From positions 5,456,001-5,520,000 of the forward strand of contig OZ218950.1 in assembly GCA_965112735.1 (NCBI GenBank): a stretch of 64,000 nucleotides of DNA, written 5' to 3'. This DNA is from Phaeosaccion multiseriatum. Its lineage: Eukaryota; Protista; Ochrophyta, other classes. Positions 1-33,842 of this stretch are shown here, piece after piece. The notes below the pieces were generated by a model, which was given only the letters and a program-made list of their open reading frames with translations, did no database searches and was not told the DNA's origin. A program made the position numbers and the translations under genes. Numbering within the stretch: position 1 is the first letter of the stretch; every line of letters begins with the position of its first letter.

Positions 1-1997
1 ACCGGTGTAGGGCTGCTGGTGTTGTTGCCAAGGGCTGCGCTCCCCGCTGCTGGGGGAGGAATGATGGCGAGGGAGGAGCCGCTGGTGTCGCCACGGGCAG
101 AGTCCGTGTCCTTTGAAGAGGTCCCTTCGCACGCCCCCTGCTGACCATCACACACCCCCCACTCGCTTGGGATGGTGTGCGGGGGGGGGGGCGAGCCACT
201 GAGCGAAATACACTGCGCAGTCCTCTGGCCCGGCTGGTGGAAGCAGCAAAGCGCGCCCAAACCGGCAAATTCGGATTCTTTTCGGAATCACAGATCCAAA
301 AGTGTCCATATATCCAACCCCTGTAGAAAAGCCGAAAATGCCCTCACCGAAGCGCTCATGTTTTCCGCTCCAAGCTCTTCGAACATCAACTCGTAGAAGT
401 TACCCTTCTGCACACGCCGTACCAAGACCACTCCGCTGCGATTCCAACCGTCCGCCGCGGACTTCCGCTGTACCAGCTGAGCAATACAACGAATGCCAAA
501 CACCTCGGTGCTGCGGGCCCGAAAAATGAACAAGTCCAATATCTCAAGCGCGGCGGCACCAATCCCTCGACCACCGAGCACGATAGCAAGAGGGTAGTCC
601 ATCCATACTACCGGAAGTAAGTCGTGCAAGCAGAGCGAGCCACAAGCCCTGTTCTCTCCCATCCTCCATGTTCACACCGCTCACGAGCCCCAACGCCGAA
701 AAAACCATCACCTTCTCTTCTGCATCACAGGCAGGCCCCGACTTCCACTCCATAGCTGTTGTGAACGACCAAACATCATGCTTCCGCCGTCCGTTACAGA
801 TAAGTAGCCAGATTGCTCAATGCCCCAATTTCCTTCAGCACCGGACGACGTACATCGCCGTACACTCCGTAGACGGTCACCAAACGCTGCCGTACCTCCC
901 GAAATGCGAGTACCGTACACTCCCAATGCCGCCTTCCAATTCCCAATTCTCCCTCGTATGCTGTGCCTCTCTTGTCGCCCATCGGTTCGCTGTTATGGCC
1001 ACAGGTCCCATATCCGCTCCACACGGAAACTCGAGGCGCTAACCACGATCAAAGGGCTCTCCGGTTCCTTCCAACAGCCCGAATAGCTGCCTTCGCATCC
1101 ATGCTGCCACCTTTGACGCTCGTACTAACTGCCTTGCGGTTGCTGTTTGTCCTGAGAGCTGAGCCTCCATCGGACCCCCCCCCTCCCCCTCCCATGCGTT
1201 CGAGATGGTGAGGGAGGTACAGCTGTAGTCCGTCTCCTTCCCTTCGCCGCTCCTCGGCCCGATATGTCTCTCGGATGTAGCTGCCGGAGGTGAGCCGTGC
1301 GAGCTCCCGTATCGAAGGTCAGCTACGCCCCCACCCATCCAGAGAGACTGCAGGCAAGCCCAGTGGCGACCACGTACGCCTCCTTCTGGCCATACTGCTG
1401 TTGTAGGTGGGAGACACTCCAACAACAAGGGAGGTACACTTAAAGACGCAGACGTACACAAACATTCACAGGCACACAGATATAGACAAAGGCACAATAC
1501 AGGGACACCAGCACCCACAAACGCACACTAGCACACACAGACGCAGACCAGCACACACAGATACAAACACACATCGTGTGTAGGGGCAGTGACCACGGCT
1601 GCTGTTGCCTAGGACTGCCCCGCCCGCCGTTGAGGGCCGGAATGGCGAGGGATGAGCCGCTGTTGTCACCGCGCGCAGAGCCAGCCTCCTTTGCGGAGGA
1701 GGCCCATATTCGCACGCCAAACACAGGAAATACGCACCCTACAGACAGAAACACCGTCTGGACATACACACACAAACATACAGACAAACACCTGGAAGAG
1801 CTAAGGGGCCTGCCGTCACCCGGGAGCCCCTTTCGTCTCGTAAAAAGACAAAAAATGCCGTGGACCACACCCCCCAAACCTTGGGCCACGGGAGAGAGGA
1901 GAGGGCGGAGAGATGAGTAGGGCGTCGGCCTCAACACCGGACGCGGATCCTACGGCGATACCAGCAAGGAAGAAAGGGCGAAGAGGGCAAAAGGCGC

Positions 1998-2195
1998 CGG
2001 CACTCAACACCGGGGAGGCGGTCGGCACTCAACACCAGACACCGCTCCTAAGCCGTAGAGCCCCACAACACCGGCAAAGGGAAAGAAAAGAAGAGTTCCG
2101 GCACTCAACACCGTGGACACTGTCGGCACTCAACACCAGACACAGTCTCCCTATCTCTCCTTCCCTCGCCCACGAGGACCCCGGCACTCAACACC
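1998..2195. repeat. Cluster of five exact 14-mers CGGCACTCAACACC
   Basis: Exact copies start at 1998, 2023, 2099, 2124 and 2182. Degenerate copies lie near 1927 and 2061. Spacers are unique. Confidence 0.85.
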
Positions 2196-2249
2196 AGGCG
2201 GGTCCCCTTGGCCGACACAAGCGCTCTGTCCGGGCCCAGGACAAGAGGC

Positions 2250-2545
2250 TCGCTTTCCACCACACCAGTATCTACTCTCCTCCTTGACAGTGTGCTCCAC
2301 TCTTCCTGGGCTCTGTCTCCGCCGCCTCAGTAAGTGACAGCGCACGCCAAGGTCTCTCCTCTTCTGAAAAATCTAAATTCCCTGCTTCACTGACATACTG
2401 TACATCTCCCCAGAGGGGACCCCCCCCCTTGGGGCGGTACCAAGCACCTACGCTGACGCTTCGCCCTGCTGGCTCCCATGTCTCCCACCTCTTCCTCGTC
2501 TCTGTTCCGCGAGAAACAAAGTTCCGTTGCTGCGCTGCTGAACAG
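2250..2545 (-). mobile_element. Decayed copy of repeat A (5' terminus) of the YR retrotransposon
   Basis: The reverse complement reads TTCAGCAGCGCAGCAACGGAACTTTGTTTCTCGC...TCAGAAGAGGAG...GGAGGAGAGTAG...GGAAAGC, colinear with A at 9748-10070. It abuts the left edge of the satellite. Confidence 0.6.
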
Positions 2546-2547
2546 GC

Positions 2548-5500
2548 TGCGCCTCGTGTTGCCAGAACAGGGCCAGATTGGGCGTGTGGGGCCTGCCGAG
2601 GCGATATCTGCCGCATGCTTGGCCATCACACGCCTCACTGTGCACAACCCGTGCTCGGCGACGGTCTGCCGTGCCCAGCTTACCCCTCATTCGGGCTGCT
2701 GGTGGCCTCAAATGCGCCTCGTGTTGCCAGAACAGGGCCAGATTGGGCGTGTGAGGCCTGACGAGGCCCCACTTGCCGCATGCTTGGCCATCACACGCGT
2801 CACTGTGCACAACCCGTGCTCGGCGACGGTCTGCCGTGCCCAGCTTACTCCTCATTCGGGCTGCTGGTGGCCTCAACATGCGCCTCGTGTTGCCAGAACA
2901 GGGCCAGATTGGGCGTGTGAGGCCTGCGGAGGCGATATCTGCCGCATGCTTGGCCATCACACGCGTCATTGTACACAACCCGTGCTCGGCGACAGTCTGC
3001 CGTGCCCAGCTTACCCCTCATTCGGGCTGCTGGTGGCCTCAAATGCGCCTCGTGTTGCCAGAACAGGGCCAGATTGGGCGTGTGAAGCCTGCGGAGGCGA
3101 TCTCTGCCGCATGCTTGGCCATCACACGCGTCACTGTGCACAACCCGTGCTCGGCGACGGTCTGCCGTGCCCAGCTTACCCCTCATTCGGGCTGCTGGTG
3201 GCCTCAACATGCGCCTCGTGTTGCCAGAACAGGGCCAGATTGGGCGTGTGGGGCCTGCCGAGGCCCTACTTGCCGCATGCTTGGCCATCACACGCCTCAC
3301 TGTGCACAACCCGTGCTCGGCGACGGTCTGCCGTGCCCAGCTTACCCCTCACTCGGGCTGCTGGTGGCCTCAAATGCGCCTCGTGTTGCCAGAACAGGGC
3401 CAAATTGGGCGTGTGAGGCCTGCGGAAGCGATATCTGCCGCGTGCTTGGCCATCACACGCCTCACTGTGCACAACCCGTGCTCGGCGACGGTCTGCCGTG
3501 CCCAGCTTACCCCTCATTCGGGCTGCTGGTGGCCTCAAATGCGCCTCGTGTTGCCAGAACAGGGCCAGATTGGGCGTGTGAGGCCTGACGAGGCCCCACT
3601 TGCCGCATGCTTGGCCATCACACGCGTCACTGTGCACAACCCGTGCTCGGCGACGGTCTGCCGTGCCCAGCTTACCCCTCATTCGGGCTGCTGGTGGCCT
3701 CAACATGCGCCTCGTGTTGCCAGAACAGGGCCAGAGGGCCAGATTGCGGAGGCGTGTCTGCCGAGGCCTGCGCCAGGCGATCATCTGCCGCACAATGCTT
3801 GGCCACCACAGCGCGAAGTACACAACCCGTGCTCGGCGACAGTCTGCCGTGCCCAGCTTACCCCTCATTCGGGCTGCTGGTGGCCTCAAATGCGCCTCGT
3901 GTTGCCAGAACAGGGCCAGATTGGGCGTGTGAAGCCTGCGGAGGCGATCTCTGCCGCATGCTTGGCCATCACACGCGTCACTGTGCACAACCCGTGCTCG
4001 GCGACGGTCTGCCGTGCCCAGCTTACTCCTCATTCGGGCTGCTGGTGGCCTCAACATGCGCCTCGTGTTGCCAGAACAGGGCCAGATTGGGCGTGTGAGG
4101 CCTGCCGAGGCCCCACTTGCCGCATGCTTGGCCATCACACGCGTCACTGTGCACAACCCGTGCTCGGCGACGGTCTGCCGTGCCCAGCTTACTCCTCATT
4201 CGGGCTGCTGGTGGCCTCAACATGCGCCTCGTGTTGCCAGAACAGGGCCAGTGGCCTCAACATGCGCCTCGTGTTGCCAGAACAGGGCCAGATTGGGCGT
4301 GTGGGGCCTGCCGAGGCCCCACTTGCCGCATGCTTGGCCATCACACGCCTCACTGTGCACAACCCGTGCTCGGCGACGGTCTGCCGTGCCCAGCTTACCC
4401 CTCATTCGGGCTGCTGGTGGCCTCAAATGCGCCTCGTGTTGCCAGAACAGGGCCAGATTGGGCGTGTGAGGCCTGACGAGGCCCCACTTGCCGCATGCTT
4501 GGCCATCACACGCGTCACTGTGCACAACCCGTGCTCGGCGACGGTCTGCCGTGCCCAGCTTACTCCTCATTCGGGCTGCTGGTGGCCTCAACATGCGCCT
4601 CGTGTTGCCAGAACAGGGCCAGATTGGGCGTGTGAGGCCTGCGGAGGCGATATCTGCCGCATGCTTGGCCATCACACGCGTCATTGTACACAACCCGTGC
4701 TCGGCGACAGTCTGCCGTGCCCAGCTTACCCCTCATTCGGGCTGCTGGTGGCCTCAAATGCGCCTCGTGTTGCCAGAACAGGGCCAGATTGGGCGTGTGA
4801 AGCCTGCGGAGGCGATATCTGCCGCATGCTTGGCCATCACACGCGTCACTGTGCACAACCCGTGCTCGGCGACGGTCTGCCGTGCCCAGCTTACTCCTCA
4901 TTCGGGCTGCTGGTGGCCTCAACATGCGCCTCGTGTTGCCAGAACAGGGCCAGATTGGGCGTGTGAGGCCTGCGGAGGCGATATCTGCCGCATGCTTGGC
5001 CATCACACGCGTCACTGTGCACAACCTGTTCTCGGCGACGGTCTGCCGTGCCCAGTTTACCCCTCATTCGGGCTGCTGGTGGCCTCAAATGCGCCTCGTG
5101 TTGCCAGAACAGGGCCAGATTGGGCGTGTGAGGCCTGCGGAGGCGATATCTGCCGCATGCTTGGCCATCACACGCGTCACTGTTCACAACCCGTGCTCGG
5201 CGACGGTCTGCCGTGCCCAGCTTACCCCTCATTCGGGCTGCTGGTGGCCTCAAATGCGCCTCGTGTTGCCAGAACAGGGCCAGATTGGGCGTGTGAGGCC
5301 TGACGAGGCCCCACTTGCCGCATGCTTGGCCATCACACGCGTCACTGTGCACAACCCGTGCTCGGCGACGGTCTGCCGTGCCCAGCTTACTCCTCATTCG
5401 GGCTGCTGGTGGCCTCAACATGCGCCTCGTGTTGCCAGAACAGGGCCAGATTGGGCGTGTGAGGCCTGCGGAGGCGATATCTGCCGCATGCTTGGCCATC

Positions 5501-7097
5501 ACACGCGTCATTGTACACAACCCGTGCTCGGCGACAGTCTGCCGTGCCCAGCTTACCCCTCATTCGGGCTGCTGGTGGCCTCAAATGCGCCTCGTGTTGC
5601 CAGAACAGGGCCAGATTGGGCGTGTGAAGCCTGCGGAGGCGATATCTGCCGCATGCTTGGCCATCACACGCGTCACTGTGCACAACCCGTGCTCGGCGAC
5701 GGTCTGCCGTGCCCAGCTTACTCCTCATTCGGGCTGCTGGTGGCCTCAACATGCGCCTCGTGTTGCCAGAACAGGGCCAGATTGGGCGTGTGAGGCCTGC
5801 GGAGGCGATATCTGCCGCATGCTTGGCCATCACACGCGTCACTGTGCACAACCTGTTCTCGGCGACGGTCTGCCGTGCCCAGTTTACCCCTCATTCGGGC
5901 TGCTGGTGGCCTCAAATGCGCCTCGTGTTGCCAGAACAGGGCCAGATTGGGCGTGTGAGGCCTGCGGAGGCGATATCTGCCGCATGCTTGGCCATCACAC
6001 GCGTCACTGTTCACAACCCGTGCTCGGCGACGGTCTGCCGTGCCCAGCTTACCCCTCATTCGGGCTGCTGGTGGCCTCAAATGCGCCTCGTGTTGCCAGA
6101 ACAGGGCCAGATTGGGCGTGTGGGGCCTGCCGAGGCCCCATTTGCCGCATGCTTGGCCATCACACGCGTCATTGTACACAACCCGTGCTCGGTGACAGTC
6201 TGCCGTGCCCAGCTTACCCCTCATTCGGGCTGCTGGTGGCCTCAACATGCGCCTCGTGTTGCCAGAACAGGGCCAGATTGGGCGTGTGAGGCCTGCGGAG
6301 GCGATATCTGCCGCATGCTTGGCCATCACACGCGTCACTGTGCACAACCCGTGCTCGGCGACGGTCTGCCGTGCCCAGCTTACTCCTCATTCGGGCTGCT
6401 GGTGGCCTCAACATGCGCCTCGTGTTGCCAGAACAGGGCCAGATTGGGCGTGTGGGGCCTGCCGAGGCCCCATTTGCCGCATGCTTGGCCATCACACGCG
6501 TCATTGTACACAACCCGTGCTCGGTGACAGTCTGCCGTGCCCAGCTTACCCCTCATTCGGGCTGCTGGTGGCCTCAACATGCGCCTCGTGTTGCCAGAAC
6601 AGGGCCAGATTGGGCGTGTGAGGCCTGCGGAGGCGATATCTGCCGCATGCTTGGCCATCACACGCGTCATTGTGCACAACCCGTGCTCGGCGACGGTCTG
6701 CCGTGCCCAGCTTACCCCTCATTCGGGCTGCTGGTGGCCTCAACATGCGCCTCGTGTTGCCAGAACAGGGCCAGATTGGGCGTGTGGGGCCTGCCGAGGC
6801 CCCACTTGCCGCATGCTTGGCCATCACACGCCTCACTGTGCACAACCCGTGCTCGGCGACGGTCTGCCGTGCCCAGCTTACCCCTCATTCGGGCTGCTGG
6901 TGGCCTCAAATGCGCCTCGTGTTGCCAGAACAGGGCCAGATTGGGCGTGTGAGGCCTGACGAGGCCCCACTTGCCGCATGCTTGGCCATCACACGCGTCA
7001 CTGTGCACAACCCGTGCTCGGCGATGGTCTGCCGTGCCCAGCTTACTCCTCATTCGGGCTGCTGGTGGCCTCAACATGCGCCTCGTGTTGCCAGAAC
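2548..7097 (+). repeat. 165/166-bp tandem satellite, block 1 (~27 monomers)
   Basis: The monomer TGCGCCTCGTGTTGCCAGAACAGGGCCAGATTGGGCGTGTGAGGCCTG...CCTCATTCGGGCTGCTGGTGGCCTCAA(C)A repeats head-to-tail with few variable sites. Confidence 0.97.
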
Positions 7098-7113
7098 CGC
7101 TGCTTCAGCAGCG

Positions 7114-8540
7114 AAGCGGCCCCTGCTCCTCTCCTGCCTTCTACTTCGTGCTGGCCCAGAGCATCGTTGCCGTCATCCTTGCTACTCCACTCGCGGCGGA
7201 GATTGTCATCCCCTCGTGCTGCAATGGCCGCATCCCCGGCCTCGAGCTTGTACAAGTGGAGGAGCAGAAATGCCAACGGCGGAAAATGCGAGGTGCTCCG
7301 ACGGCGGCGGTTTCGGCAGCTCAACAATCGGCGGCTTGCCACGGAGACGACACTATCGCTGTCTGGGCGGTCCCTCGGGACGTCCCCGCCCTCCAGCGCG
7401 GCACAGGGGCCTTGCGGCTGAGTGCCCTCATACTTTCTACGCACTATAACCTCTTCAGCTGGCCGGGGGAGCACCCTCATGTCCCCTCCTGCATCAACCT
7501 CGAGAAGCACGGCGTGGAGGGGAGCTGGCTCTCCTGCCAGCGGGTCTTGGGCATCATGATTGACACTGTGCGGGGGACTGCTTCGCTCCGCCCCGATAAG
7601 CTGGAGGAGCTGCAGATTCTTTTGGCTGAGTGGGGGCCAGAGCGACATTTTTGCTCGCTGAAGGAGCTCCAGTCTGTCATCGGGAAACTCCGGAGCATGA
7701 GCTACTGCGTAGGGCCCGGTCGCTACATGCTCCGCCAGCTCACCAACCTCACTCGACACTGCGGCTTCTCGCCCCACGCTCGCATCACGCTCTCCTCTCA
7801 AGCGCACTTCGACCTGCAGCGGTGGCGGGATCTTTTAGATTGGGGGGTGAAAGATCCCTCCGTCTTGGTCCGCCCTTTAGAATTGATGGTGAAGCGAGTC
7901 CCGGATATCGTATTGGATGGAGATGCAGCAGTGTGGGTGGACTCAGAGGGGGCTATCAGGGGGAGGCATTGTGTGGGAGGCAGCAGGACTTTTCGCGCAG
8001 TGGGAGTGGCCTCCCGAGGTACGGGCTGCTCACCAGGCGTCTCCACAGCTCATCTCCATCAACGACCTCGAGATGGCAGTGATTGTGGTGGGCATCTGCA
8101 CTTTTTGGCTGCACGACCCAGCCAGCTTCTGTCTCGCTGGCGTCTTGGTCAGAGGGGACAACACCAGCTCCCTCTCGTGGATTGAGCACCAGGGAGCGGC
8201 CAACAGTGACATTTCCAATGGTCTGGCAGGACTGGTGGGCCTTTTGGAGATCGGAGCGCAGTGCAGCCTCAACGTCGAGCACGTCGAAGGGGCGAAGAAC
8301 ATCATCCCCGACGGCCTCAGCCGCTACTCCCTCGATTATCTCATCGGTACTGACCACCTTTCTCCCATCTCTCCCATGTTTCAGCCGCTGACGGAGTGGC
8401 AACAGCTGGAGCCCAACTCAACGATTATGGACGCCGTTTTCGCAACCTTGCGTGGGGAGCCGCAGCGAGCGGTCTCAGGCCTGCAACCGTTCGTCGCTAC
8501 GCGACGGTCCAGCGTCAGTGGACTGACTTCTGCGGTCTAG
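7114..8540 (+). pseudogene. DIRS/Ngaro-type reverse transcriptase + RNase H, N-terminally truncated, one frameshift near 7950-7965
   Basis: RT motif B-like GPCSSPAFY, motif C-like CHGDDT, INLEK..VLGIMIDT..SLRPDKLEEL..KELQSVIGKL. RNase H motifs DGDAA / SINDLEM / RGDNT / HVEGAKNIIPDGLSR are split over two frames (ORFs 6971-8185 and 7917-8540). Confidence 0.85.
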
Positions 8541-9511
8541 CAGGCGTTCCCGTGTTACTGTTTGGAGATGACGACCCTCGCAATGCGGAGGTATTCATGG
8601 CGTTCATAGCGTGGTGCCGAGAGGAGAGGGGCAACGGTGCGGCCACTCTGAGGGGCAAGGGCCCAGGGGTGAATGACCTCTTCTCGCGGGAGGGGCTCAA
8701 GGGGCCTGCAGTCGGGAGGCAGGTCCACCTGCTCCTTCGGAGCTACAGGCTGGAGGACGGAGACAGCGTACAGCAGCTGCCAGTAGACGTGGACATTCTT
8801 CGCAGCACCAGACGGGAGCTGCGAGGGGAGGGGGAGAGAGGGCACATGTTAGGGGCCCTCATCCTCCTGGGGTGGTTCTTTCTCATGCGAGTGAGCGAGT
8901 TCGCCCCGAACAGTGTGAGTGGAGGGACAGATGAAGACTACATTCTCACTCATCACGATGTTACCTTCGCAGATAGAGCGAGCCGGAGCTACACTGGACA
9001 AGAGGCGCTTGCCGCGATCGAGGAAGGAGTGGAGCTGTGCCGCGTCACTCTCGTCTTCACTGGTAGCAAGACGGACACCTTCAGGAGAGGAGAAGTGCGG
9101 ACACACGAGCGGACGGGGGTCGTCGACTTGTGTCCAGTGGAGGCTGCCCTGGAGGCGGTGCGCTGCCACTACCGACGAACGGAGCAGGAGCGGGAGGCAG
9201 CAGGGGGTAGTGCCCTCCTTTCCTCCTATGTGGACGAGTCGGGGAGGAGGAAGTGCGTCACCTCCCACCAAGTCAGCAAGGCACTGAAGAGGAAAGCTCA
9301 GCAGATTGGTAGGGATCCAGCACGCATCTCGTCCCACTCCCTGCGGAGCGGTGGGGCTACGGCATTGGCGGCAAGCGGCGCTGACTGGCGACTCCTGCAG
9401 TTCTGGGGCAGGTGGGCGTCGGCGACAGCCTTTCAGTACGCGCACCGTACGGTGGAGGAGGCTCTTGGCTGGGCAGGGCGCATGCTGCATGCAGACACGG
9501 CAGCGCCCTGA
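8396..9511 (+). CDS. Tyrosine recombinase (DIRS/Ngaro-type integrase)
   Basis: Uninterrupted 371-codon frame overlapping the RNase H frame. Catalytic motifs FFLMRVSE, SKTD, LCPVEA, SHSLRSGGAT, GRWAS and FQY are all present. Confidence 0.92.
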   Translation: MATAGAQLNDYGRRFRNLAWGAAASGLRPATVRRYATVQRQWTDFCGLAGVPVLLFGDDDPRNAEVFMAFIAWCREERGNGAATLRGKGPGVNDLFSREGLKGPAVGRQVHLLLRSYRLEDGDSVQQLPVDVDILRSTRRELRGEGERGHMLGALILLGWFFLMRVSEFAPNSVSGGTDEDYILTHHDVTFADRASRSYTGQEALAAIEEGVELCRVTLVFTGSKTDTFRRGEVRTHERTGVVDLCPVEAALEAVRCHYRRTEQEREAAGGSALLSSYVDESGRRKCVTSHQVSKALKRKAQQIGRDPARISSHSLRSGGATALAASGADWRLLQFWGRWASATAFQYAHRTVEEALGWAGRMLHADTAAP

Positions 9512-9526
9512 GGACTTTGGGTGAAT

Positions 9527-9747
9527 GGGGGATGAGCGGTTCCTCTGAACCGCTGCCCCCAAAGGCCCGTGCTCGCCCCCGTCAGGGGAGCGACACCCCA
9601 GGGACACTGTGTGCCTCGAGGTGAGTCCTTCTTAGGACTGCACTCTTAATGAAAAGTTTATCCCCCAGCATTGGCGACGACTGAATGTGGAGGAGCGAGG
9701 CCTCTCAATGGGTACCCAGTTTTGATGGAGCGCAACGACTGCGAGAA
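9527..9747 (+). repeat. Split direct repeat B1 (221 bp)
   Basis: Matches 13576-13796 in full and 10334-10473 over its first 140 bp. Confidence 0.92.
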
Positions 9748-10333
9748 CGCTGCTTCAGCAGCGGAGCCACGGAAGTTCTGTTCTCGCAGAGTGGAGTTCG
9801 CAGAGTGGAGTCGACGGAGAAACAGGGTATTGAGAGCCGAGGGGTAGGGTGTGGAGCGTGGGCGCGTGTGTGGACCCCGAGGGGGGTTTAGGATAGAAAT
9901 ATATATGGCAGCAGATGGAAAAGCAGTGTTCTCTGCTGCTCGAGCTCAGAAGAGGAGGAGCCCTGCTGCACTCGCCACCCTACCGTGATTGAAGGAGATC
10001 GAGAGCAGGTACGCGGGGGTGTGGGCAAGCAGGGAGGAGAGTAGGGACGGTGGTGTAGGAAAGCAAGGATCGCAGTAGGGCCCGACTGCTTCTCTTGTGA
10101 GGGTGAAGATGCTGTGTGCTTACTTGTGTCATGCTACCAGTTGCAAACACAAGATGTGCCCCCAATGCTAACAGTTGCAAGGGCTTGCGCTACGCACACG
10201 CATCTAGTAGAAGTTAGAGACCCTTAGCCTGGTGTAGTATGGAGCTCTCACCGGGCAAAAGGTTTTTTCTTTCTCCACCCACCCACCCATCTAGATTAGT
10301 TTAGTACAGAAGTTAGATACTCAGTAGTTAAGG
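9748..10333 (+). repeat. Split direct repeat A2 (586 bp), TATA-like AAATATATAT near 9897-9906
   Basis: Near-identical to 13004-13575. Visible differences are a 14-bp tandem duplication near 9784-9811 and one substitution. Its first 16 bp recur at 7098. Confidence 0.92.
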
Positions 10334-10473
10334 GGGGGATGAGCGGTTCCTCTGAACCGCTGCCCCCAAAGGCCCGTGCTCGCCCCCGTCAGGGGAGCGA
10401 CACCCCAGGGACACTGTGTGCCTCGAGGTGAGTCCTTCTTAGGACTGCACTCTTAATGAAAAGTTTATCCCCC

Positions 10474-13003
10474 TGGCCTCAACATGCGCCTCGTGTTGCC
10501 AGAACAGGGCCAGATTGGGCGTGTGGGGCCTGCCGAGGCCCCACTTGCCGCATGCTTGGCCATCACACGCCTCACTGTGCACAACCCGTGCTCGGCGACG
10601 GTCTGCCGTGCCCAGCTTACCCCTCATTCGGGCTGCTGGTGGCCTCAAATGCGCCTCGTGTTGCCAGAACAGGGCCAGATTGGGCGTGTGAGGCCTGACG
10701 AGGCCCCACTTGCCGCATGCTTGGCCATCACACGCGTCACTGTGCACAACCCGTGCTCGGCGACGGTCTGCCGTGCCCAGCTTACTCCTCATTCGGGCTG
10801 CTGGTGGCCTCAACATGCGCCTCGTGTTGCCAGAACAGGGCCAGATTGGGCGTGTGAGGCCTGCGGAGGCGATATCTGCCGCATGCTTGGCCATCACACG
10901 CGTCATTGTACACAACCCGTGCTCGGCGACAGTCTGCCGTGCCCAGCTTACCCCTCATTCGGGCTGCTGGTGGCCTCAAATGCGCCTCGTGTTGCCAGAA
11001 CAGGGCCAGATTGGGCGTGTGAGGCCTGCGGAGGCCCCACTTGCCGCATGCTTGGCCATCACACGCGTCACTGTGCACAACCTGTTCTCGGCGACGGTCT
11101 GCCGTGCCCAGTTTACCCCTCATTCGGGCTGCTGGTGGCCTCAAATGCGCCTCGTGTTGCCAGAACAGGGCCAGATTGGGCGTGTGAGGCCTGCGGAGGC
11201 GATATCTGCCGCATGCTTGGCCATCACACGCGTCACTGTTCACAACCCGTGCTCGGCGACGGTCTGCCGTGCCCAGCTTACCCCTCATTCGGGCTGCTGG
11301 TGGCCTCAAATGCGCCTCGTGTTGCCAGAACAGGGCCAGATTGGGCGTGTGGGGCCTGCCGAGGCCCCATTTGCCGCATGCTTGGCCATCACACGCGTCA
11401 TTGTACACAACCCGTGCTCGGTGACAGTCTGCCGTGCCCAGCTTACCCCTCATTCGGGCTGCTGGTGGCCTCAACATGCGCCTCGTGTTGCCAGAACAGG
11501 GCCAGATTGGGCGTGTGAGGCCTGCGGAGGCGATATCTGCCGCATGCTTGGCCATCACACGCGTCACTGTGCACAACCCGTGCTCGGCGACGGTCTGCCG
11601 TGCCCAGCTTACTCCTCATTCGGGCTGCTGGTGGCCTCAACATGCGCCTCGTGTTGCCAGAACAGGGCCAGATTGGGCGTGTGAGGCCTGCGGAGGCGAT
11701 ATCTGCCGCATGCTTGGCCATCACACGCGTCACTGTGCACAACCCGTGCTCGGCGACGGTCTGCCGTGCCCAGCTTACCCCTCATTCGGGCTGCTGGTGG
11801 CCTCAACATGCGCCTCGTGTTGCCAGAACAGGGCCAGATTGGGCGTGTGAGGCCTGCGGAGGCGATATCTGCCGCATGCTTGGCCATCACACGCGTCACT
11901 GTGCACAACCCGTGCTCGGCGACGGTCTGCCGTGCCCAGCTTACTCCTCATTCGGGCTGCTGGTGGCCTCAAAAGCGCCTCGTGATGCCAGAACAGGGCC
12001 AGATTGGGCGTGTGGGGCCTGCCGAGGCCCTACTTGCCGCATGCTTGGCCATCACACGCCTCACTGTGCACAACCCGTGCTCGGCGACGGTCTGCCGTGC
12101 CCAGCTTACCCCTCACTCGGGCTGCTGGTGGCCTCAAATGCGCCTCGTGTTGCCAGAACAGGGCCAGATTGGGCGTGTGAGGCCTGCGGAGGCGATATCT
12201 GCCGCATGCTTGGCCATCACACGCGTCACTGTGCACAACCCGTGCTCGGCGACGGTCTGCCGTGCCCAGCTTACTCCTCATTCGGGCTGCTGGTGGCCTC
12301 AAATGCGCCTCGTGTTGCCAGAACAGGGCCAGATTGGGCGTGTGAGGCCTGACGAGGCCCCACTTGCCGCATGCTTGGCCATCACACGCGTCACTGTGCA
12401 CAACCCGTGCTCGGCGACGGTCTGCCGTGCCCAGCTTACTCCTCATTCGGGCTGCTGGTGGCCTCAACATGCGCCTCGTGTTGCCAGAACAGGGCCAGAT
12501 TGGGCGTGTGAGGCCTGACGAGGCCCCACTTGCCGCATGCTTGGCCATCACACGCGTCATTGTGCACAACCCGTGCTTGGCGACGGTCTGCCGTGCCCAG
12601 CTTACCCCTCATTCGGGCTGCTGGTGGCCTCAAATGCGCCTCGTGTTGCCAGAACAGGGCCAGATTGGGCGTGTGAAGCCTGCGGAGGCGATCTCTGCCG
12701 CATGCTTGGCCATCACACGCGTCACTGTGCACAACCCGTGCTCGGCGACGGTCTGCCGTGCCCAGCTTACTCCTCATTCGGGCTGCTGGTGGCCTCAAAT
12801 GCGCCTCGTGTTGCCAGAACAGGGCCAGATTGGGCGTGTGAGGCCTGCGGAGGCGATATCTGCCGCATGCTTGGCCATCACACGCGTCACTGTGCACAAC
12901 CCGTGCTCGGCGACGGTCTGCCGTGCCCAGCTTACTCCTCATTCGGGCTGCTGGTGGCCTCAAATGCGCCTCGTGTTGCCAGAACAGAGCCAGATTGGGC
13001 GTG
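10474..13003 (+). repeat. 165/166-bp satellite, block 2 (~15 monomers)
   Basis: Same monomer and orientation as block 1. Confidence 0.97.
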
Positions 13004-13796
13004 CGCTGCTTCAGCAGCGGAGCCACGGAAGTTCTGTTCTCGCAGAGTGGAGTCGACGGAGAAACAGGGTATTGAGAGCCGAGGGGTAGGGTGTGGAGCG
13101 TGGGCGCGTGTGTGGACCCCGAGGAGGGTTTAGGATAGAAATATATATGGCAGCAGATGGAAAAGCAGTGTTCTCTGCTGCTCGAGCTCAGAAGAGGAGG
13201 AGCCCTGCTGCACTCGCCACCCTACCGTGATTGAAGGAGATCGAGAGCAGGTACGCGGGGGTGTGGGCAAGCAGGGAGGAGAGTAGGGACGGTGGTGTAG
13301 GAAAGCAAGGATCGCAGTAGGGCCCGACTGCTTCTCTTGTGAGGGTGAAGATGCTGTGTGCTTACTTGTGTCATGCTACCAGTTGCAAACACAAGATGTG
13401 CCCCCAATGCTAACAGTTGCAAGGGCTTGCGCTACGCACACGCATCTAGTAGAAGTTAGAGACCCTTAGCCTGGTGTAGTATGGAGCTCTCACCGGGCAA
13501 AAGGTTTTTTCTTTCTCCACCCACCCACCCATCTAGATTAGTTTAGTACAGAAGTTAGATACTCAGTAGTTAAGGGGGGGATGAGCGGTTCCTCTGAACC
13601 GCTGCCCCCAAAGGCCCGTGCTCGCCCCCGTCAGGGGAGCGACACCCCAGGGACACTGTGTGCCTCGAGGTGAGTCCTTCTTAGGACTGCACTCTTAATG
13701 AAAAGTTTATCCCCCAGCATTGGCGACGACTGAATGTGGAGGAGCGAGGCCTCTCAATGGGTACCCAGTTTTGATGGAGCGCAACGACTGCGAGAA
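13004..13796 (+). mobile_element. Solo A-B repeat of the YR retrotransposon (793 bp, non-coding)
   Basis: A (13004-13575) plus full B (13576-13796). The flanks GATTGGGCGTG | TGAGGCCTG reconstitute an intact monomer, with no TSD. Confidence 0.92.
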
Positions 13797-16592
13797 TGAG
13801 GCCTGACGAGGCCCCACTTGCCGCATGCTTGGCCATCACACGCGTCACTGTGCACAACCCGTGCTCGGCGACGGTCTGCCGTGCCCAGCTTACCCCTCAT
13901 TCGGGCTGCTGGTGGCCTCAACATGCGCCTCGTGTTGCCAGAACAGGGCCAGATTGGGCGTGTGAGGCCTGCGGAGGCGATATCTGCCGCATGCTTGGCC
14001 ATCACACGCGTCACTGTGCACAACCCGTGCTCGGCGACAGTCTGCCGTGCCCAGCTTACCCCTCATTCGGGCTGCTGGTGGCCTCAAATGCGCCTCGTGT
14101 TGCCAGAACAGGGCCAGATTGGGCGTGTGAAGCCTGCGGAGGCGATCTCTGCCGCATGCTTGGCCATCACACGCGTCACTGTGCACAACCCGTGCTCGGC
14201 GACGGTCTGCCGTGCCCAGCTTACTCCTCATTCGGGCTGCTGGTGGCCTCAACATGCGCCTCGTGTTGCCAGAACAGGGCCAGATTGGGCATGTAAGGCC
14301 TGCGGAGGCGATATCTGCCGCACGCTTGGCCATCACACGCGTCACTGTGCACAACCCGTGCTCGGCGACGGTCTGCCGTGCCTAGCTTACCCCTCATTCG
14401 GGCTGCTGGTGGCCTCAAAAAAAAAATGCGCCTCGTGTTGCCAGAACAGGGCCAGATTGGGCGTGTGAGGCCTGCGGAGGCCCCACTTGCCGCATGCTTG
14501 GCCATCACACGCGTCAATGTTCACAACCCGTGCTCGGCGACGGTCTGCCGTGCCCAGCTTACTCCTCATTCGGGCTGCTGGTGGCCTCAACATGCGCCTC
14601 GTGTTGCCAGAACAGGGCCAGATTGGGCGTGTGAGGCCTGACGAGGCCCCACTTGCCGCATGCTTGGCCATCACACGCGTCATTGTGCACAACCCGTGCT
14701 CGGCGACGGTCTGCCGTGCCCAGCTTACCCCTCATTCGGGCTGCTGGTGGCCTCAAATGCGCCTCGTGTTGCCAGAACAGGGCCAGATTGGGCGTGTGAA
14801 GCCTGCGGAGGCGATCTCTGCCGCATGCTTGGCCATCACACGCGTCACTGTGCACAACCCGTGCTCGGCGACGGTCTGCCGTGCCCAGCTTACTCCTCAT
14901 TCGGGCTGCTGGTGGCCTCAAATGCGCCTCGTGTTGCCAGAACAGGGCCAGATTGGGCGTGTGAGGCCTGCGGAGGCGATATCTGCCGCATGCTTGGCCA
15001 TCACACGCGTCACTGTGCACAACCCGTGCTCGGCGACGGTCTGCCGTGCCCAGCTTACCCCTCATTCGGGCTGCTGGTGGCCTCAAATGCGCCTCGTGTT
15101 GCCAGAACAGGGCCAAATTGGGCGTGTGAGGCCTGCGGAGGCGATATCTGCCGCTTGCTTGGCCATCACACGCGTCACTGTGCACAACCCGTGCTCGGCG
15201 ACGGTCTGCCGTGCCCAGCTTACCCCTCATTCGGGCTGCTGGGTGGCCTCAAATGCGCCTCGTGTTGCCAGAACAGGGCCAGATTGGGCGTGTGAGGCCT
15301 GCGGAGGCGATATCTGCCGCATGCTTGGCCATCACACGCGTCACTGTGCACAACCCGTGCTCGGCGACGGTCTGCCGTGCCCAGCTTACTCCTCATTCGG
15401 GCTGCTGGTGGCCTCAACATGCGCCTCGTGTTGCCAGAACAGGGCCAGATTGGGCATGTGAGGCCTGCGGAGGCGATATCTGCCGCACGCTTGGCCATCA
15501 CACGCGTCACTGTTCACAACCCGTGCTCGGCGACGGTCTGCCGTGCCCAGCTTACCCCTCATTCGGGCTGCTGGTGGCCTCAAATGCGCCTCGTGTTGCC
15601 AGAACAGGGCCAGATTGGGCATGTGAGGCCTGCGGAGGCGATATCTGCCGCACGCTTGGCCATCACACGCGTCACTGTTCACAACCCGTGCTCGGCGACG
15701 GTCTGCCGTGCCCAGCTTACCCCTCATTCGGGCTGCTGGTGGCCTCAAATGCGCCTCGTGTTGCCAGAACAGGGCCAGATTGGGCATGTGAGGCCTGCGG
15801 AGGCGATATCTGCCGCATGCTTGGCCATCACACGCGTCATTGTACACAACCCGTGCTCGGCGACAGTCTGCCGTGCCCAGCTTACCCCTCATTCGGGCTG
15901 CTTGTGGCCTCAAATGCGCCTCGTGTTGCCAGAACAGGGCCAGATTGGGCGTGTGAGGCCTGACGAGGCCCCACTTGCCGCATGCTTGGCCATCACACGC
16001 GTCACTGTGCACAACCCGTGCTCGGCGACGGTCTGCCGTGCCCAGCTTACTCCTCATTCGGGCTGCTGGTGGCCTCAACATGCGCCTCGTGTTGCCAGAA
16101 CAGGGCCAGATTGGGCATGTGAGGCCTGCGGAGGCGATATCTGCCGCACGCTTGGCCATCACACGCGTCACTGTGCACAACCCGTGCTCGGCGACGGTCT
16201 GCCGTGCCTAGCTTACCCCTCATTCGGGCTGCTGGTGGCCTCAAATGCGCCTCGTGTTGCCAGAACAGGGCCAGATTGGGCGTGTGAGGCCTGCGGAGGC
16301 GATATCTGCCGCATGCTTGGCCATCACACGCGTCACTGTTCACAACCCGTGCTCGGCGACGGTCTGCCGTGCCCAGCTTACCCCGCATTCGATCGGGCTG
16401 CTGGTGGCCTCAAATGCGCCTCGTGTTGCCAGAACAGGGCCAGATTGGGCGTGTGAGGCCTGCGGAGGCCGTATCTGCCGCGTGCTTGGCAATCACCTGC
16501 GTCAGCCCGGGCCACGGCCTGCATCTTATTTTGCTCGCCGTGGGCCCGCCGTGCCCCGCCAATCCCTCATTCGGGCTGCTCGTGGCCTCAAA
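13797..16592 (+). repeat. 165/166-bp satellite, block 3 (~17 monomers, last one degenerate)
   Basis: Same monomer. It has private variants (GGGCATGT, GCACGCTT) and an A10 run at 14417-14426. Confidence 0.95.
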
Positions 16593-16597
16593 AGCCG

Positions 16598-17225
16598 ACC
16601 GAGGGGGTGAGATGGAGCGTGGGCGCGTGTGTGGGCCCCCTCGATGCATTATGTTACTTGGTCTTACTGGAACACTTGCTCTGCGGCGCGAGCTCATGCA
16701 AGAAACTGAAAGTGTGAATGTGATTGTGTGTGTGTGTGTGTGTGTGGCGGGTGTGTGTGTGTGTGTGAAGCCACAGAATTAAAAGTGTATTCCCCAACAT
16801 TGGCGACGACTGGATGAGGAGGAGCGAGGCCTCTCAATGGGTACCCAGTTTTGATTGAGCGCAACGACCGCGAGAATGCGCACTACCCTACCGCTTCACT
16901 GAAGGAGATTGAGGGCATGCAGATACGGGGGGGTATACGAGCACAGGGATCGAGGAGAGTAGAGACTGATGGTGCATGTAGGGAAGCAAGGTTGACTGTT
17001 TATTTCGCTGCTTCAGCCCGAATGAGGGGTTGGCGGGGCAAAATACTTACTTGTGTCATGCTAACGGTTGCAAACACAAGAGGTGCCCCCAATGCTAACT
17101 GTCGCAAGGGCTTGCGCCACGCACATGCATCTAAGTAGAGGTTTGAGACCCTTGGCCTGGCGTAGGTTGCGCTCTCGTCAGGTGGCCTGGCGTAGATCGT
17201 GCTCTCATCAGGCCCAAGGTTTTTT
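16598..17225 (+). mobile_element. Decayed fragments of repeats B and A of the YR element
   Basis: A fragment (GGAGCGTGGGCGCGTGTGTGG, ~16614), 3' half of B (16781-16876, ending GCGAGAA), then the distal half of A (CTTACTTGTGTCATGCTA...GCAAACACAAGA...CAAGGTTTTT). Confidence 0.75.
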
Positions 17226-17229
17226 CAGT

Positions 17230-17358
17230 ATTGGGCCTTTGAGGCCTGCCGAGGCACACCATTTGGCTCGTGTATGTCCATCACTTCCGTCGGTCAGGCC
17301 CGTTGTGCGCAACCCGTGCTCGGCGCGGGCCTGCCTGCTGCACCGCAAACGCCTCATA
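17230..17358 (+). repeat. Isolated, highly diverged satellite monomer
   Basis: ATTGGGC..TGAGGCCTGCCGAGGC..CCATCAC..CAACCCGTGCTCGGCG..CCTCAT match the monomer in order. Confidence 0.65.
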
Positions 17359-17359
17359 C

Positions 17360-18200
17360 CCTTGCTTTCCTCCCAGACCAGTATATCTACTCTCCTCGTC
17401 CCAGCAGTGTAGAATGCACCGCGCCTCCTCTCGCAACCTCCATCGGCCCAGCGCTTGCGATACACAGGCGGGCTGCTCCTCCGCGCAACTCTCCGTGCAT
17501 GGCTGCGCTGCTGAAGCAGCGAGACCCCGAGGGAGTGAAGGTGGTGTGTGGTGGGTGTGTGGGCGAGGGCGGGATGTGGGGGTGTGAGTGGGTGTGTGTG
17601 TTTGTGAAGCGAGCGCCACGACAGCGATCGAGAAGTGTGTGTGTACATACGTCGATCAGTGAGAATAATGTGGTATGTGGCTCCCCTGCTGAATACGCGC
17701 TGTTGACCAGTATAGGCTCTACTTTCTTGCAGTCCTTGTGCTCCATCCAACCTGGGAACCCATCGAGAGGCCTCGCCCGCTCTTACATTCAGTCGTCGCC
17801 AATGCTGGGGAAACCTTCAGAATGCTTACATGCAAGAGCGCAGCTCCCGCTGTAAGGGGCTCGCTCACCAAGGAAAATACACAGAGTCTCCAGGGTGTCG
17901 CCCCCCTTGCGGGGAACGAGCACGCGGGTCTTTGCATGGGCGGGCGCAAGCGGTCCAGCGGTGCTTGAGGGGCGGACTGGACGCGGTCCGTTCCACACAA
18001 GAGCCGCTTCACCCCCCACTCACCCAAAGCCCCCACGGCGCAGCTGTGTTCATGATTAGCCTGCGCATGCGCCCTGCTTTGTATAGAGAACCGCTTCGCC
18101 CCCCCGCCCCAATACTTCTCCTATCGACTGTGACCGCCTCTGTGCCCCGCCCAACTCGTCCAGCCAATGTCTCCCTCCCGTAGAGTGCGACGAGCACGAG
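17360..18200 (-). mobile_element. Decayed inverted copy of the YR element 3' part (YR C-terminus, B1, A)
   Basis: The minus strand gives remnants of the HSLR/WGRW-coding DNA and 'AGRM..TAAP.GLWV', then B (to 17723, ending CTGCAAGAA), a ~200-bp GT-rich insert, then CGCTGCTTCAGCAGCG at 17521-17506 and degraded A. Confidence 0.72.
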
Positions 18201-19467
18201 AAAACTTCGTACTCGGTGCGAACACGCACCGATACCTAAGCTGGCGCTCCTCTCCAGATCTTTCTGCCTGAGGCGCGGCTTCTCTGCGCCGAGAGCAAGG
18301 CGATCCCCGCCCAAAAAAACACAGACCCGTGTGTCACCAACAAGTCCACGGAGTCCGAAAAAGTCCATCGCCCCTCCACGCTTGCTGGAGTCCCCACCGA
18401 ATTTCTCAAACCCAAAGCCTTGGAAATAAATAAATAACTACGCTCTCGCGACATAATGGCAATTTACCCCCGCCGGGGTCCGACATCCCTGCTGCTCTTG
18501 AGATACAGCCCCATAGCACGCGTAATTCGGTGTGGGGAAAATATGGACAGGTCCAGAACAACTAACTTCCGGACGAATACCTCGCGGCCGTCTGCACCAA
18601 TCGATGGCAGGCAGACCGAGAAGAGACAAGGGGAGTAACCCCTTTGTACCCCATCAAGTGGAGAAAAGGCTCGCCAAGCCCTCATCTGTCCCCCGCACCG
18701 GCACCCGGCCCGTCGGATGTCCCCACAATCTCTTCAGGTCGCCCAGTGCTCACCAACAGGTGAAACGAGGGAGAGCACGAAGTTCCGTCCTCACCAACCC
18801 GCCACCCCCCGAGAGAGGAGGTGATTGAGTAGGGACTATGTCACCCCCCCACACACACACCGTAAGATTGCATTCACACAAACCTACGTTCAGTCGCACA
18901 CACGCACCGTACTTACAAAAAAGTCACAACATGTTGAGCTGCTGTGTGGAGACGCACTTCTCCCTCTGCAGCCAGTCCAGCCTTCGTCCAGCCTTCCCGA
19001 CTCCACCTGGTACTGTGGCCACATCATTCCGCTTGCGCGTTCTCCCTCTGCTCTCGCCTCGGACCCCATGCACCGCACTACCGTCCCTCCCCCGCTGCTG
19101 CTGCTGCTACAGCTGCTGCCGCTGCCGCTACTGCTCCGCTCCTCCCCAGCCAGGTGGCGGCCTGTCCACCCCACAAGCGAGGCGAACGGCCATCAGGGCT
19201 AGCCCTGCTATCGGACGCGCTCACCGGCTACCCCCCTTCCTCACGCGTATCGTGCTGGGGGTAAAAAACCAGACTACTCCAGAGGTAGAGAAGGGAAGAG
19301 ACGAAGAGACTAGGGTAGCGGGACCCCACGACACGAACGTGGACGAAAGGGCGACGAGCGGGCTAGAGCTCTGTGACCAGCGAGAGGCATGAAAGGAAAA
19401 GCCTCGGCGTCCTTGCCTGACAGGCGCACCATTGCATGCAAGTCAGGTGCTAGTGGAGGGTAATTTG

Positions 19468-19784
19468 CCCCCTTCCACTTCAACACTTACACTCTCGGCG
19501 TCTACAATGAGTTTGAGTGATACGGAATTGACTGGTCGCAAGCGAAAGGAATGGGCCCCCACCCGCGGGAGGCCGCCGCAAAGGAAGGCAGATCTCCCGC
19601 AAAGACAGGCAGCGCAGGGGAAGCGGGAGGTGGCCCTGCCTTTCTTTCTTCCCGCTTCCCCTGCGCTGCCTTTCTTTGCGGGAGCTCTGCCTTCCTTTGC
19701 GGCGGCCTCCCGCGGGTGGGGGCCCATTCCTTTCGCTTGCGACCAGTCAATTCCCACTCACTCATGTGTTGAAGTGGAAGGGGG
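19468..19784. mobile_element. Foldback MITE (317 bp) with 19-bp TIRs and TTG target-site duplication
   Basis: TIR CCCCCTTCCACTTCAACAC at 19468-19486 and 19766-19784. Inner 105-bp inverted arms (19524-19628 / 19650-19754) have 2 mismatches. TTG lies on both flanks. Confidence 0.8.
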
Positions 19785-32364: not shown

Positions 32365-33842
32365 TCGGCCCCATGCACGCCTAGCGGTTTTGCTCTAGGC
32401 CGCTAGGCCGCTCAGCCTTCGGCCGATCTAGACCTAGGCCGGCGGCCTCCGGCCGCTCTAGGCTGCTCACTTTTCAGTCCTAGGCGGCCTATATAGCCCG
32501 CCTCTAGGCAGCCTCCCAGTGGCCGTGGGCGCGTGCGTGGTGTCAGCCCGTGACATGCTTCTGAGGCCACCCTGCTTCCTGCTTCTGGCCGGCGCCAGAG
32601 GGCCTGCTTCCTGCTTCTGGGCTGGCCTCTCTCAGAAGCATGTCAGGGGCCGACCTGTAATCAGATAATCTTGTCCAGGGTCGACTCCCTCCCTCCCTCC
32701 CTCCCTCCCTCCCTCCCTCCTCCCTCCCTCCCTCCCTCCCTCCCTCCCTCCCTCCCTCCCTCCCTCCCTCCCTCCCTCCCTCCCTCCCTCCCTCCCTCCC
32801 TCCCTCCCTCCCTCCCTCCCTCCCTCCCTCCCTCCCTCCCTCCCTCCCTCCCTCCCTCCCTCCCTCCCTCCCTCCCTCCCTCCCTCCCTCCCTCCCTCCC
32901 TCCCTCCCTCCCTCCCTCCCTCCCTCCCTCCCTCCCTCCCTCCCTCCCTCCCTCCCTCCCTCCCTCCCTCCCTCCCTCCCTCCCTCCCTCCCTCCCTCCC
33001 TCCCTCCCTCCCTCCCTCCCTCCCTCCCTCCCTCCCTCCCTCCCTCCCTCCCTCCCTCCCTCCCTCCCTCCCTCCCTCCCTCCCTCCCTCCCTCCCTCCC
33101 TCCCTCCCTCCCTCCCTCCCTCCCTCCCTCCCTCCCTCCCTCCCTCCCTCCCTCCCTCCCTCCCTCCCTCCCTCCCTCCCTCCCTCCCTCCCTCCCTCCC
33201 TCCCTCCCTCCCTCCCTCCCTCCCTCCCTCCCTCCCTCCCTCCCTCCCTCCCTCCCTCCCTCCCTCCCTCCCTCCCTCCCTCCCTCCCTCCCTCCCTCCC
33301 TCCCTCCCTCCCTCCCTCCCTCCCTCCCTCCCTCCCTCCCTCCCTCCCTCCCTCCCTCCCTCCCTCCCTCCCTTCCTCCCTCCCTCCCTCCCTCCCTCCC
33401 TCCCTCCCTCCCTTGCTTCCTGCTTCTGGCCGGCACCAGAGGGCCTGCTTCCTGCTTCTGGCCGGCGCCAGCCGGCCTGCTTCCTGCTTCTGGGCTGGCC
33501 TCTCTCAGAAGCATGTCAGGGGCAGAGTGGTGCCGCCCAGCCAGTGGGTAGCAGCACACCTGTAGGTCTGCACTCCTCGTAGGTCCAGCGAGGCGGAAGA
33601 GACAACACGAACCAAGTCTACTCCTCACTTCCAATCCCATGCAATGAAACTGACTACTCTTTGCACTCTGGGCACTCCCACCGTCCGCCTAGTTGGCTGG
33701 CGTCTGCCCTAGGCCGCGCGGGCCTGCGGCCCGCGTAGGGCGCCTAGGCGGCGGCATACAAATAGGCCGAGGGCCTACGGCCCTCGCTAGGCCGGGCAAT
33801 TTTCCCAAATAGGTCTAGGCCGCTAGGCGTGCATGGGGCCGA
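32365..33842. mobile_element. Non-autonomous TIR DNA transposon (~1.48 kb) inserted in a (TG)n tract
   Basis: Perfect 23-bp TIR TCGGCCCCATGCACGCCTAGCGG (32365-32387 / 33820-33842). Many subterminal CTAGGC/GCCTAG motifs at both ends. TGTGTGT on both flanks. Confidence 0.8.
32685..33413. repeat. (CCCT)n microsatellite, ~180 units, flanked by direct repeats 32573-32649 and 33414-33521
   Basis: Directly visible. The flanks share TGCTTCCTGCTTCTGG...CTCTCAGAAGCATGTCAGGGG. Confidence 0.95.

Follow-up and report, generated by a model that had tools for sequence, protein, structure and literature searches.

Satellite arrays carrying tyrosine-recombinase retrotransposons, one per nuclear chromosome, are candidate regional centromeres in the ochrophyte Phaeosaccion multiseriatum

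DIRS-1 is a tyrosine-recombinase (YR) retrotransposon whose terminal repeats are inverted and which has an internal complementary region; copies of the element itself make up its clusters. In Dictyostelium discoideum there is one such cluster per chromosome, which marks the centromere (PMC2665215, PMC2995078, PMC7192593). Centromere DNA is known for few stramenopiles; diatoms have short low-GC regions (10.1101/096016), an oomycete Copia-like clusters (PMC7082073) and brown algae a chromodomain Gypsy element (PMC11541908), and all these cases lack a satellite with a resident recombinase retrotransposon. Here we describe such a combination in Phaeosaccion multiseriatum. One host protein has its best match in Phaeothamnion confervicola (49% identity), in keeping with an ochrophyte host. 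The window, the whole 64,000-nucleotide stretch that was analysed (C1:5456001-5520000 of a 22-contig assembly, GCA_965112735.1, in which C1 is contig OZ218950.1), contains the larger part of a 165-bp satellite array that is interrupted by two young copies, ins1 (7098-10473) and ins2 (13004-13796), of a YR retrotransposon with terminal repeats called A and B. Our reading, to which we give a probability of about 65%, is that this domain is one of 16 satellite plus YR-retrotransposon domains that are most likely regional centromeres, and that the elements are aimed at them by YR recombination.

Contigs C1-C16 are nuclear and chromosome-scale (2.4-7.4 Mb), and the remaining C17-C22 (27-224 kb, AT-rich and partly plastid-like) are probably organellar. 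Four independent searches, with ins1 DNA, the recombinase, the reverse transcriptase/RNase H (RT/RH) protein and the 16 bases that start repeat A, placed one cluster site on each of the 16 nuclear contigs, and there is satellite in every cluster. The initial annotation of the window had suggested testing for a genome-wide association of element and satellite and for one cluster per chromosome, and both are borne out. The cluster limits are approximate, having been read from short genome samples; they are 5450-5475 kb on C1 (satellite of 165/166 bp), 3729-3781 kb on C2 (177 bp), 2-91 kb on C3 (187 bp), 165-198 kb on C4 (186 bp), 2533-2573 kb on C5 (177 bp), 2338-2392 kb on C6 (177 bp), 816-875 kb on C7 (187 bp), 1170-1215 kb on C8 (187/164 bp), 2104-2118 kb on C9 (177 bp), 741-820 kb on C10 (187/194 bp), 2179-2201 kb on C11 (177 bp), 1639-1695 kb on C12 (185 bp), 1618-1624 kb on C13 (176 bp), 1001-1028 kb on C14 (~186 bp), 1996-2083 kb on C15 (177 bp) and 492-524 kb on C16 (187 bp). 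Although the clusters sum to only ~1% of the genome, they contain 63 of its 64 exact copies of the terminal 16-mer CGCTGCTTCAGCAGCG, and a scan for this 16-mer at ≤1 mismatch gave 39 and 37 matches on the two strands versus 0 and 4 for a reversed-pattern control. Recombinase and RT matches outside the clusters show at most 55% protein identity and belong to other YR families. The lone off-cluster 16-mer lies in an isolated 24-base match to the start of A (C13:3178170-3178193) with no further element sequence, and is either a chance match or a footprint. We also note that C1 and C4 start with CCCTAA telomere repeats and C3 with an AGGG-rich simple repeat (C3:1-600); the C3 end, with its cluster in the first 91 kb, may be unfinished or telocentric.

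The satellites of the 16 clusters all have periods of 164-194 bp, and their consensus monomers can be aligned with one another through conserved blocks such as GCCAGATTGGGC and GGCCAGCAAACGCGTCGTTCGGGCTG. Those of C3, C7 and C10 have a nearly identical 187-bp unit (92-96%), and the C1 satellite is the most diverged, with 66-70% identity to that of C11 and otherwise only short blocks in common. Judged from these alignments, the 165-bp variant is specific to C1 and its superfamily is present once on every nuclear chromosome. The expectation that the window's satellite would be found at other loci therefore holds for diverged relatives, which are on all the other chromosomes, and fails for the 165-bp variant itself, found on C1 only.

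On C1, Tandem Repeats Finder (TRF) gives the satellite a period of 165/166 bp, with higher-order periods of 331 and 496 bp and matches of 90-96%, in three plus-strand blocks of the window, 2548-7097 (~27.5 monomers, 93-100% alike), 10474-13003 (~15 monomers) and 13819-16504. Reading the junction directly puts the right end of ins2 at 13796, in place of the 13818 implied by TRF, so that the third block begins at 13797; this block, of ~16 monomers, extends to ~16595, and its final monomers are degenerate (80-85%). Upstream of the window the same 165/166-bp satellite continues at C1:5450640-5454791 (~25 monomers), with element debris to its left as far as ~C1:5449725. Overall, the C1 domain spans ~26 kb (~C1:5449.7-5475.4 kb) and holds ~84 monomers, and window positions 1-2547 are an island between two satellite blocks rather than the outer edge of the domain.

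The two insertions have 726 bases in common at 97.9% identity and a further 221 bases at 100%, which agrees with the initial annotation's description of a 165-bp satellite holding two near-identical young copies. Insertion ins1 (plus strand) is a rearranged, non-autonomous copy of the family we call F1 and is 99.2% identical to a full-length copy on C12. It consists, in order, of a 16-base A1 stub, a few filler bases, the 3′ 2.4 kb of the coding region and the repeats B1-A2-B2. The stub (7098-7113, plus strand) is CGCTGCTTCAGCAGCG, a near-palindrome at the start of repeat A, of which the window has further copies at 9748, 13004 and, on the minus strand, 17506-17521. A fragment of open reading frame (ORF) 2, encoding the RT end and RNase H, follows at 7117-8537 (plus strand, by tblastn); its first residue corresponds to residue 299 of the F1 protein (772 residues), and there is a frameshift near 7941-7963. 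The tyrosine-recombinase gene ORF3 (8396-9511, plus strand) is intact, with 371 aa from its first start codon in a frame that is open from 8354. Its product is 99.5% identical to that of the C12 copy and matches Pfam PF00589 (Phage_integrase) at 30.4 bits against a cut-off of 27.1 (30.4, 27.8 and 29.8 bits for ORF3 of three copies), and the R, HxxR, W and Y motifs of tyrosine recombinases are legible in the translation; in an exact look-up in public assemblies this recombinase was not on record. The repeats, all on the plus strand, are B1 (9527-9747, 221 bases), A2 (9748-10333, 586 bases) and a truncated B2 (10334-10473), whose 140 of 221 bases are 100% identical to B1. To the right of ins1 the satellite is out of register, owing to either a 32-base duplication or a 133-base deletion. 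Thus, ins1 either has undergone rearrangement or did not arise as a clean product of the recombinase.

Insertion ins2 (plus strand) is a solo A-B unit, with A at 13004-13575 and B at 13576-13796, and runs from the start of A through the end of B (...ACTGCGAGAA). A unit of this kind is what a full copy would become if its A1 recombined with its A2. It is joined between GGGCGTG and TGAGGCC of a single monomer, with 0 bases gained or lost and no target duplication. The element family is also present in the contigs of a second sample, with a few base differences.

The full-length F1 copy on C12, found by searching the assembly with ins1, comprises 6887 bases, arranged as A1-internal-B1-A2-B2. There is 100% identity between A1 and A2 over 513 bases, and the 221-base B1 and B2 differ at one base (99.5%). 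It has three open frames, ORF1 (699 aa), ORF2 (772 aa) and ORF3 (385 aa), the last of which overlaps the end of ORF2. Taken as a single sequence, the ORF2 protein has no Pfam match to E 10, no match in a word search of proteins and no match in the PDB. It does have 1146 relatives at E ≤ 0.001 (HMMER), the closest of which are metagenomic proteins on element-sized contigs with the same three-ORF layout. An alignment of 34 relatives displays the RT motifs KxDVxxAFR, FGWxxSP and YVDD and the RNase H (D-E-D-D) motifs DASxxGxGG, NxLE, GDNT and ADxxSR; four of the 34 match RVT_1, and the ORF2 profile finds in the PDB Ty3 Gag-Pol (RNase H region), Ty3 RT and HIV-1 RT chains at E ~2e-7 to 1e-6. Where the relatives read YVDD, RT of the type found here reads HGDD. 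We note that this RT goes undetected by Pfam RVT_1, and that its connection to known RTs emerges only with a profile of distant relatives. The 772-790 residues of ORF2 are taken up by RT and RNase H. A Crypton-like DNA transposon, considered because ins1 has no recognisable RT and Pfam finds none, is ruled out by the full-length ORF2 and its profile link to RT/RNase H.

Pfam searches of ORF1-3 with E up to 10 found no methyltransferase, integrase, protease or chromodomain family. ORF1 matches no Pfam family and an atlas search gave no useful lead; its position suggests that it is a putative gag gene. The terminal repeats are direct and not inverted as in DIRS1-like elements. From its sequence, then, we take the element to be a split-direct-repeat tyrosine-recombinase retrotransposon. 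Since it also has no methyltransferase, it would be Ngaro-like by structure, a subgroup assigned by layout and not by phylogeny; split direct repeats are common to Ngaro-, PAT- and VIPER-like elements, and so are not specific to Ngaro (PMC6681497). The Ngaro/PAT type of YR retrotransposon originally suggested for the window is upheld by the PF00589 match, the ORF2 profile and the A1...B1-A2-B2 layout.

A second autonomous family, F2, has 67% DNA identity to F1 and 65-68% identity in the recombinase. Its ORFs (~610-640, ~790 and ~390 aa) are intact in four copies, one each on C8 and C10 and two on C15; another copy on C10 is broken and has of ORF2 only the final third, though its recombinase frame is intact. 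F1 and F2 have related termini, those of F2 being an A start of AGCCTGTTCAGCAGCG and a B end of ...GGCGCGAA. A third family is shorter and gene-less and has F1-type termini. By these comparisons the clusters contain at least three related families, the young copies in the window being F1. The similarity of neither F1 nor F2 extends to the satellite, as no monomer resembles their DNA; an origin of the satellite from the element, and insertion guided by homology, are both ruled out by this.

The junctions of the elements bear on how they arrived. In five insertions, on C1, C12, C2, C3 and C13, joining the flanks restores an unbroken monomer, with neither loss nor target duplication, which is what is expected of conservative tyrosine-recombinase recombination. 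The picture is less clear for a sixth case, in the C16 cluster, where CTCAAAAAA flanks an element array on either side and, unlike in the five precise insertions, may be a 9-base target duplication. Elements at least 99% alike occupy satellites whose divergence between chromosomes is 15-30% or more, and each element is joined inside a monomer, so they must represent separate insertion events and not co-amplification. Strict site-specific integration is ruled out, since the 19 mapped junctions lie at many positions of the monomer. Four of the 19 nevertheless fall within two columns of the monomer alignment, at GGGC|ATGTTG (simulated p ~0.008), and these hot-spot junctions are on C3, C6, C7 and C12 and in both orientations.

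By our proposed mechanism, the element RNA would first be reverse transcribed and a DNA form carrying a B|A junction, with the conserved terminus ...GCGAGAA|CGCTGCTTCAGCAGCG, would be made. The YR would then join this junction to satellite DNA by conservative recombination, leaving no target duplication. The recombination site and the way of aiming are those that seem to us most probable: the aim would be the satellite domain rather than one sequence, albeit with a hot spot in the monomer. Later recombination and deletion would give rise to truncated copies, of which ins1 is one, to solo units of A and B, of which ins2 is one, and to A-internal-B forms and tandem A-B arrays.

Whether the clusters attract elements or merely preserve them is best judged from the young copies. 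The young YR copies (97-100% alike, with terminal repeats 99.5-100% alike) are all in clusters (12/12), and the six with intact ORF2 all adjoin satellite; full ORF sets were read in five of these six and ORF2 only in the C7 copy. Our control was a Gypsy family, met by chance in the C10 cluster, with copies 99-100% identical, which is found on the arms of C2, C5, C8, C10, C11 and C14 and has only 2 of 8 copies in clusters (one-sided Fisher p ~7e-4 for 12/12 against 2/8). This control family is young and active-looking and is not confined to the clusters; in the C10 cluster the end of a Gypsy pol (C10:756003-757115) shows weak similarity, under the Pfam cut-offs in both cases, to an integrase C-terminal domain and a chromodomain. 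It could be argued that the YR elements integrate anywhere and survive only in gene-free, recombination-poor satellite domains, the rest having been selected out. Such passive accumulation would suit a genome that is compact and gene-dense outside the domain, the old decayed copies that pile up at the domain edges and element proteins with no aiming domain. It does not sit well with the presence of every young YR copy in a cluster or with the contact of all the intact-ORF2 copies with satellite monomers, and the six equally young Gypsy copies on the arms indicate that insertions outside the clusters are tolerated, so that aiming is favoured over mere survival. We therefore consider passive accumulation unlikely; the observations favour targeted integration.

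Regional centromeres typically appear as a single domain on each chromosome, with a nucleosome-sized satellite that varies from chromosome to chromosome and a restricted retroelement. The anatomy of the P. multiseriatum domains, and the confinement of the young elements to one satellite domain per chromosome, are directly observed, and it is this single domain per chromosome, together with the nucleosome-sized related satellites and the restricted retroelement, that leads us to regard the 16 domains as probable centromeres. They could instead be non-centromeric satellite heterochromatin, for example a locus that traps or silences transposable elements, with the centromeres elsewhere. Kinetochore assembly at the domains is a prediction, the domains are short, and in brown algae a Gypsy element takes the place of a satellite (PMC12477816, PMC11541908), all of which would be compatible with such heterochromatin. 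Yet it would leave the one-per-chromosome layout, the chromosome-specific variants of nucleosome-sized monomers and the resident retroelement without a ready explanation; no second one-per-chromosome repeat appeared among the genome searches made here, and the centromeres of Ectocarpus are also short, with a similar average size of ~39 kb (PMC12477816). We think it quite improbable that the domains are heterochromatin of this sort.

The proposal that the domains are centromeres with aimed YR elements has several points to its disadvantage. The centromere label draws on the one-per-chromosome layout and on analogy, and the domains are small (~13-90 kb). The C3 cluster is at a contig end that lacks a telomere, and the assembly may be incomplete there. 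Array sizes and junctions rest on the assembly, and the public runs are contigs whose depths are not copy numbers. Two of the genome searches scored 40 of 91 and 24 of 120 candidates, so rare off-cluster copies could have escaped. With regard to aiming, insertion sites in the monomer vary, and sequence-specific recombination alone is insufficient to account for them; none of the element ORFs yielded a chromodomain or another aiming domain (by Pfam and, for ORF1, the atlas search); about 14 of 36 sampled A-start junctions have no satellite flank; and the abnormal ends of ins1 mean that it was not necessarily placed by the recombinase.

Some element units are arranged head to tail, at C6:2367085-2368676, C3:72924-80827, C6:2350605-2355387 and C15:1996964-2005469, with A-start spacings of ~795, 2620, 2384 and 2122 bases, respectively; such arrays possibly originate in integration at a resident B|A junction, multimeric intermediates or unequal crossing-over. 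The idea that DNA-level duplication (unequal crossing-over, segmental duplication or satellite amplification) and not repeated transposition has spread the elements can point to tandem arrays with these spacings, to two C2 copies with identical flanks and to the abnormal ends of ins1, but we regard it as very improbable, as it does not explain near-identical elements precisely joined within monomers of satellites that are 15-30% or more different across chromosomes.

A more specific version of the centromere proposal, which we offer tentatively and would not expect to hold in full, is that the true centromeres lie on the GCCAGATTGGGC-box satellite superfamily and that the Ngaro-type elements are actively aimed at centromeric chromatin by an interaction of the recombinase or of ORF1 rather than by a chromodomain, with GGGC|ATGTTG as the preferred crossover. 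If true, stramenopiles would gain their first described satellite-based centromere and their first described centromere-homing YR retrotransposon, and there would be a natural recombinase system able to write DNA into centromeres with no duplication of the target.

The sequences around the C1 array contain older elements, which we identified by blastn, using the elements of other clusters as the library. To the left of the first satellite block in the window, positions 1-2250 are also element debris. They include the internal part of the gene-less, non-autonomous family (267-1144, minus strand, 72%) and an F2-like 5′ region (1859-2269, minus strand, 85-87%), which is followed by F2-like B/A terminal repeats (2079-2558, minus strand, 79%). 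A repeat at 32-533, in common with the flank of a C10 cluster copy (89-96%, blastn), is outside all three YR families and is probably another cluster-resident element. To the right of the array is a decayed plus-strand copy of A/B terminal repeats of F1 or gene-less type (16599-17177, 75-96%), made up of an A fragment (16599-16639), a B end (16777-16879) and A (16885-17177). It is followed by a decayed plus-strand monomer (17230-17357) with two weak collinear matches (17230-17255 and 17304-17357, best E 5e-7), and then by a decayed minus-strand copy, also with F1-type or gene-less-type repeats (17506-18077), which comprises the exact terminal 16-mer (17506-17521) and, at 71-88%, B (17722-17934) and the end of the internal region (18001-18077). 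The outermost remnant, at 19284-19404 (minus strand, 75%), extends from the last part of A into the internal region. In the gene region beyond 19404, blastn with the element library and tblastn with all six element proteins returned only simple-repeat matches.

Much of what the initial annotation had said of these flanks stands. The right-edge copies on both strands and the decayed monomer near 17230 are present, and the 45 kb of genes is free of element copies as it had stated. The minus-strand copy that it placed at 2250-2545 exists as well, with an actual extent of 2079-2558 and debris throughout 1-2250. Its picture of an array that is young inside and old outside is correct in that the near-identical copies are in homogeneous satellite and the decayed ones in non-satellite islands or flanks, and incorrect in that the left decayed block is not the outer edge. 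Its attribution of all copies to one family has to be given up, since by blastn the left decayed copies are F2-like or gene-less and the young ones F1.

Several other repeats lie to the right of the domain. Just past the last element remnant is an inverted repeat (19514-19764) with 115-base arms that are 96% complementary and a 21-base spacer. Within the gene region there is a (CTCC)n microsatellite of 729 bases (32685-33413, ~182 units, 99% purity), directly followed by a 32-base repeat (33414-33493).

Our literature search found no paper describing satellite plus YR-retroelement domains of this type in ochrophytes, and the initial annotation, too, had known of none. In structure the elements resemble the Ngaro/PAT/VIPER-like group (PMC6681497), with which they have in common the three ORFs (one in the gag position, RT/RH and YR), the overlap of ORF2 and ORF3, the A1...B1-A2-B2 repeats and near-identical repeat pairs in young copies. 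They differ from that group in their very divergent RT, with no Pfam match and HGDD in place of YVDD. Ngaro elements are abundant in Ectocarpus (2.45% of the genome), where the centromere-specific element is a Gypsy and not a YR element (PMC12477816); the family described here, in contrast, is confined to satellite domains.

The centromere-specific element of Ectocarpus and other brown algae, ECR-1, is a chromodomain Gypsy long terminal repeat (LTR) element (PMC11541908, PMC12477816, 10.64898/2025.12.07.692804). The two systems are alike in having an ochrophyte host, short centromere regions and a restricted retroelement. However, ECR-1 belongs to the LTR elements and has a DDE integrase as well as a chromodomain, whereas the restricted element in P. 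multiseriatum is a YR element with no detectable chromodomain, and the Gypsy family tested here, with its weak, sub-threshold chromodomain match, is dispersed. A comparison of brown-alga centromeres makes no mention of a YR element (10.64898/2025.12.07.692804). An atlas preprint reports that satellite arrays of plants and animals are colonised by specialised retroelements, with YR elements infrequent and found in chordate centromere arrays; its few algae and protists have 'cryptic' centromeres, and no alga in it has a satellite with a YR element (10.64898/2026.09.17.752431).

If confirmed, the P. multiseriatum domains would be an independent case of the 'satellite plus specialised retroelement' centromere with a different integration enzyme. 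They make it possible to test how a tyrosine recombinase without an obvious reader domain finds centromeric chromatin, and whether centromere-homing has arisen convergently in every retroelement class, and the 16 loci are ready targets for CENH3 mapping and for artificial chromosomes in the host alga. DIRS-1 at the Dictyostelium centromeres is the nearest functional counterpart, likewise a YR retrotransposon with one cluster per chromosome. The P. multiseriatum elements differ from it in that they have split direct repeats, are low in copy number and are set in a nucleosome-sized satellite.

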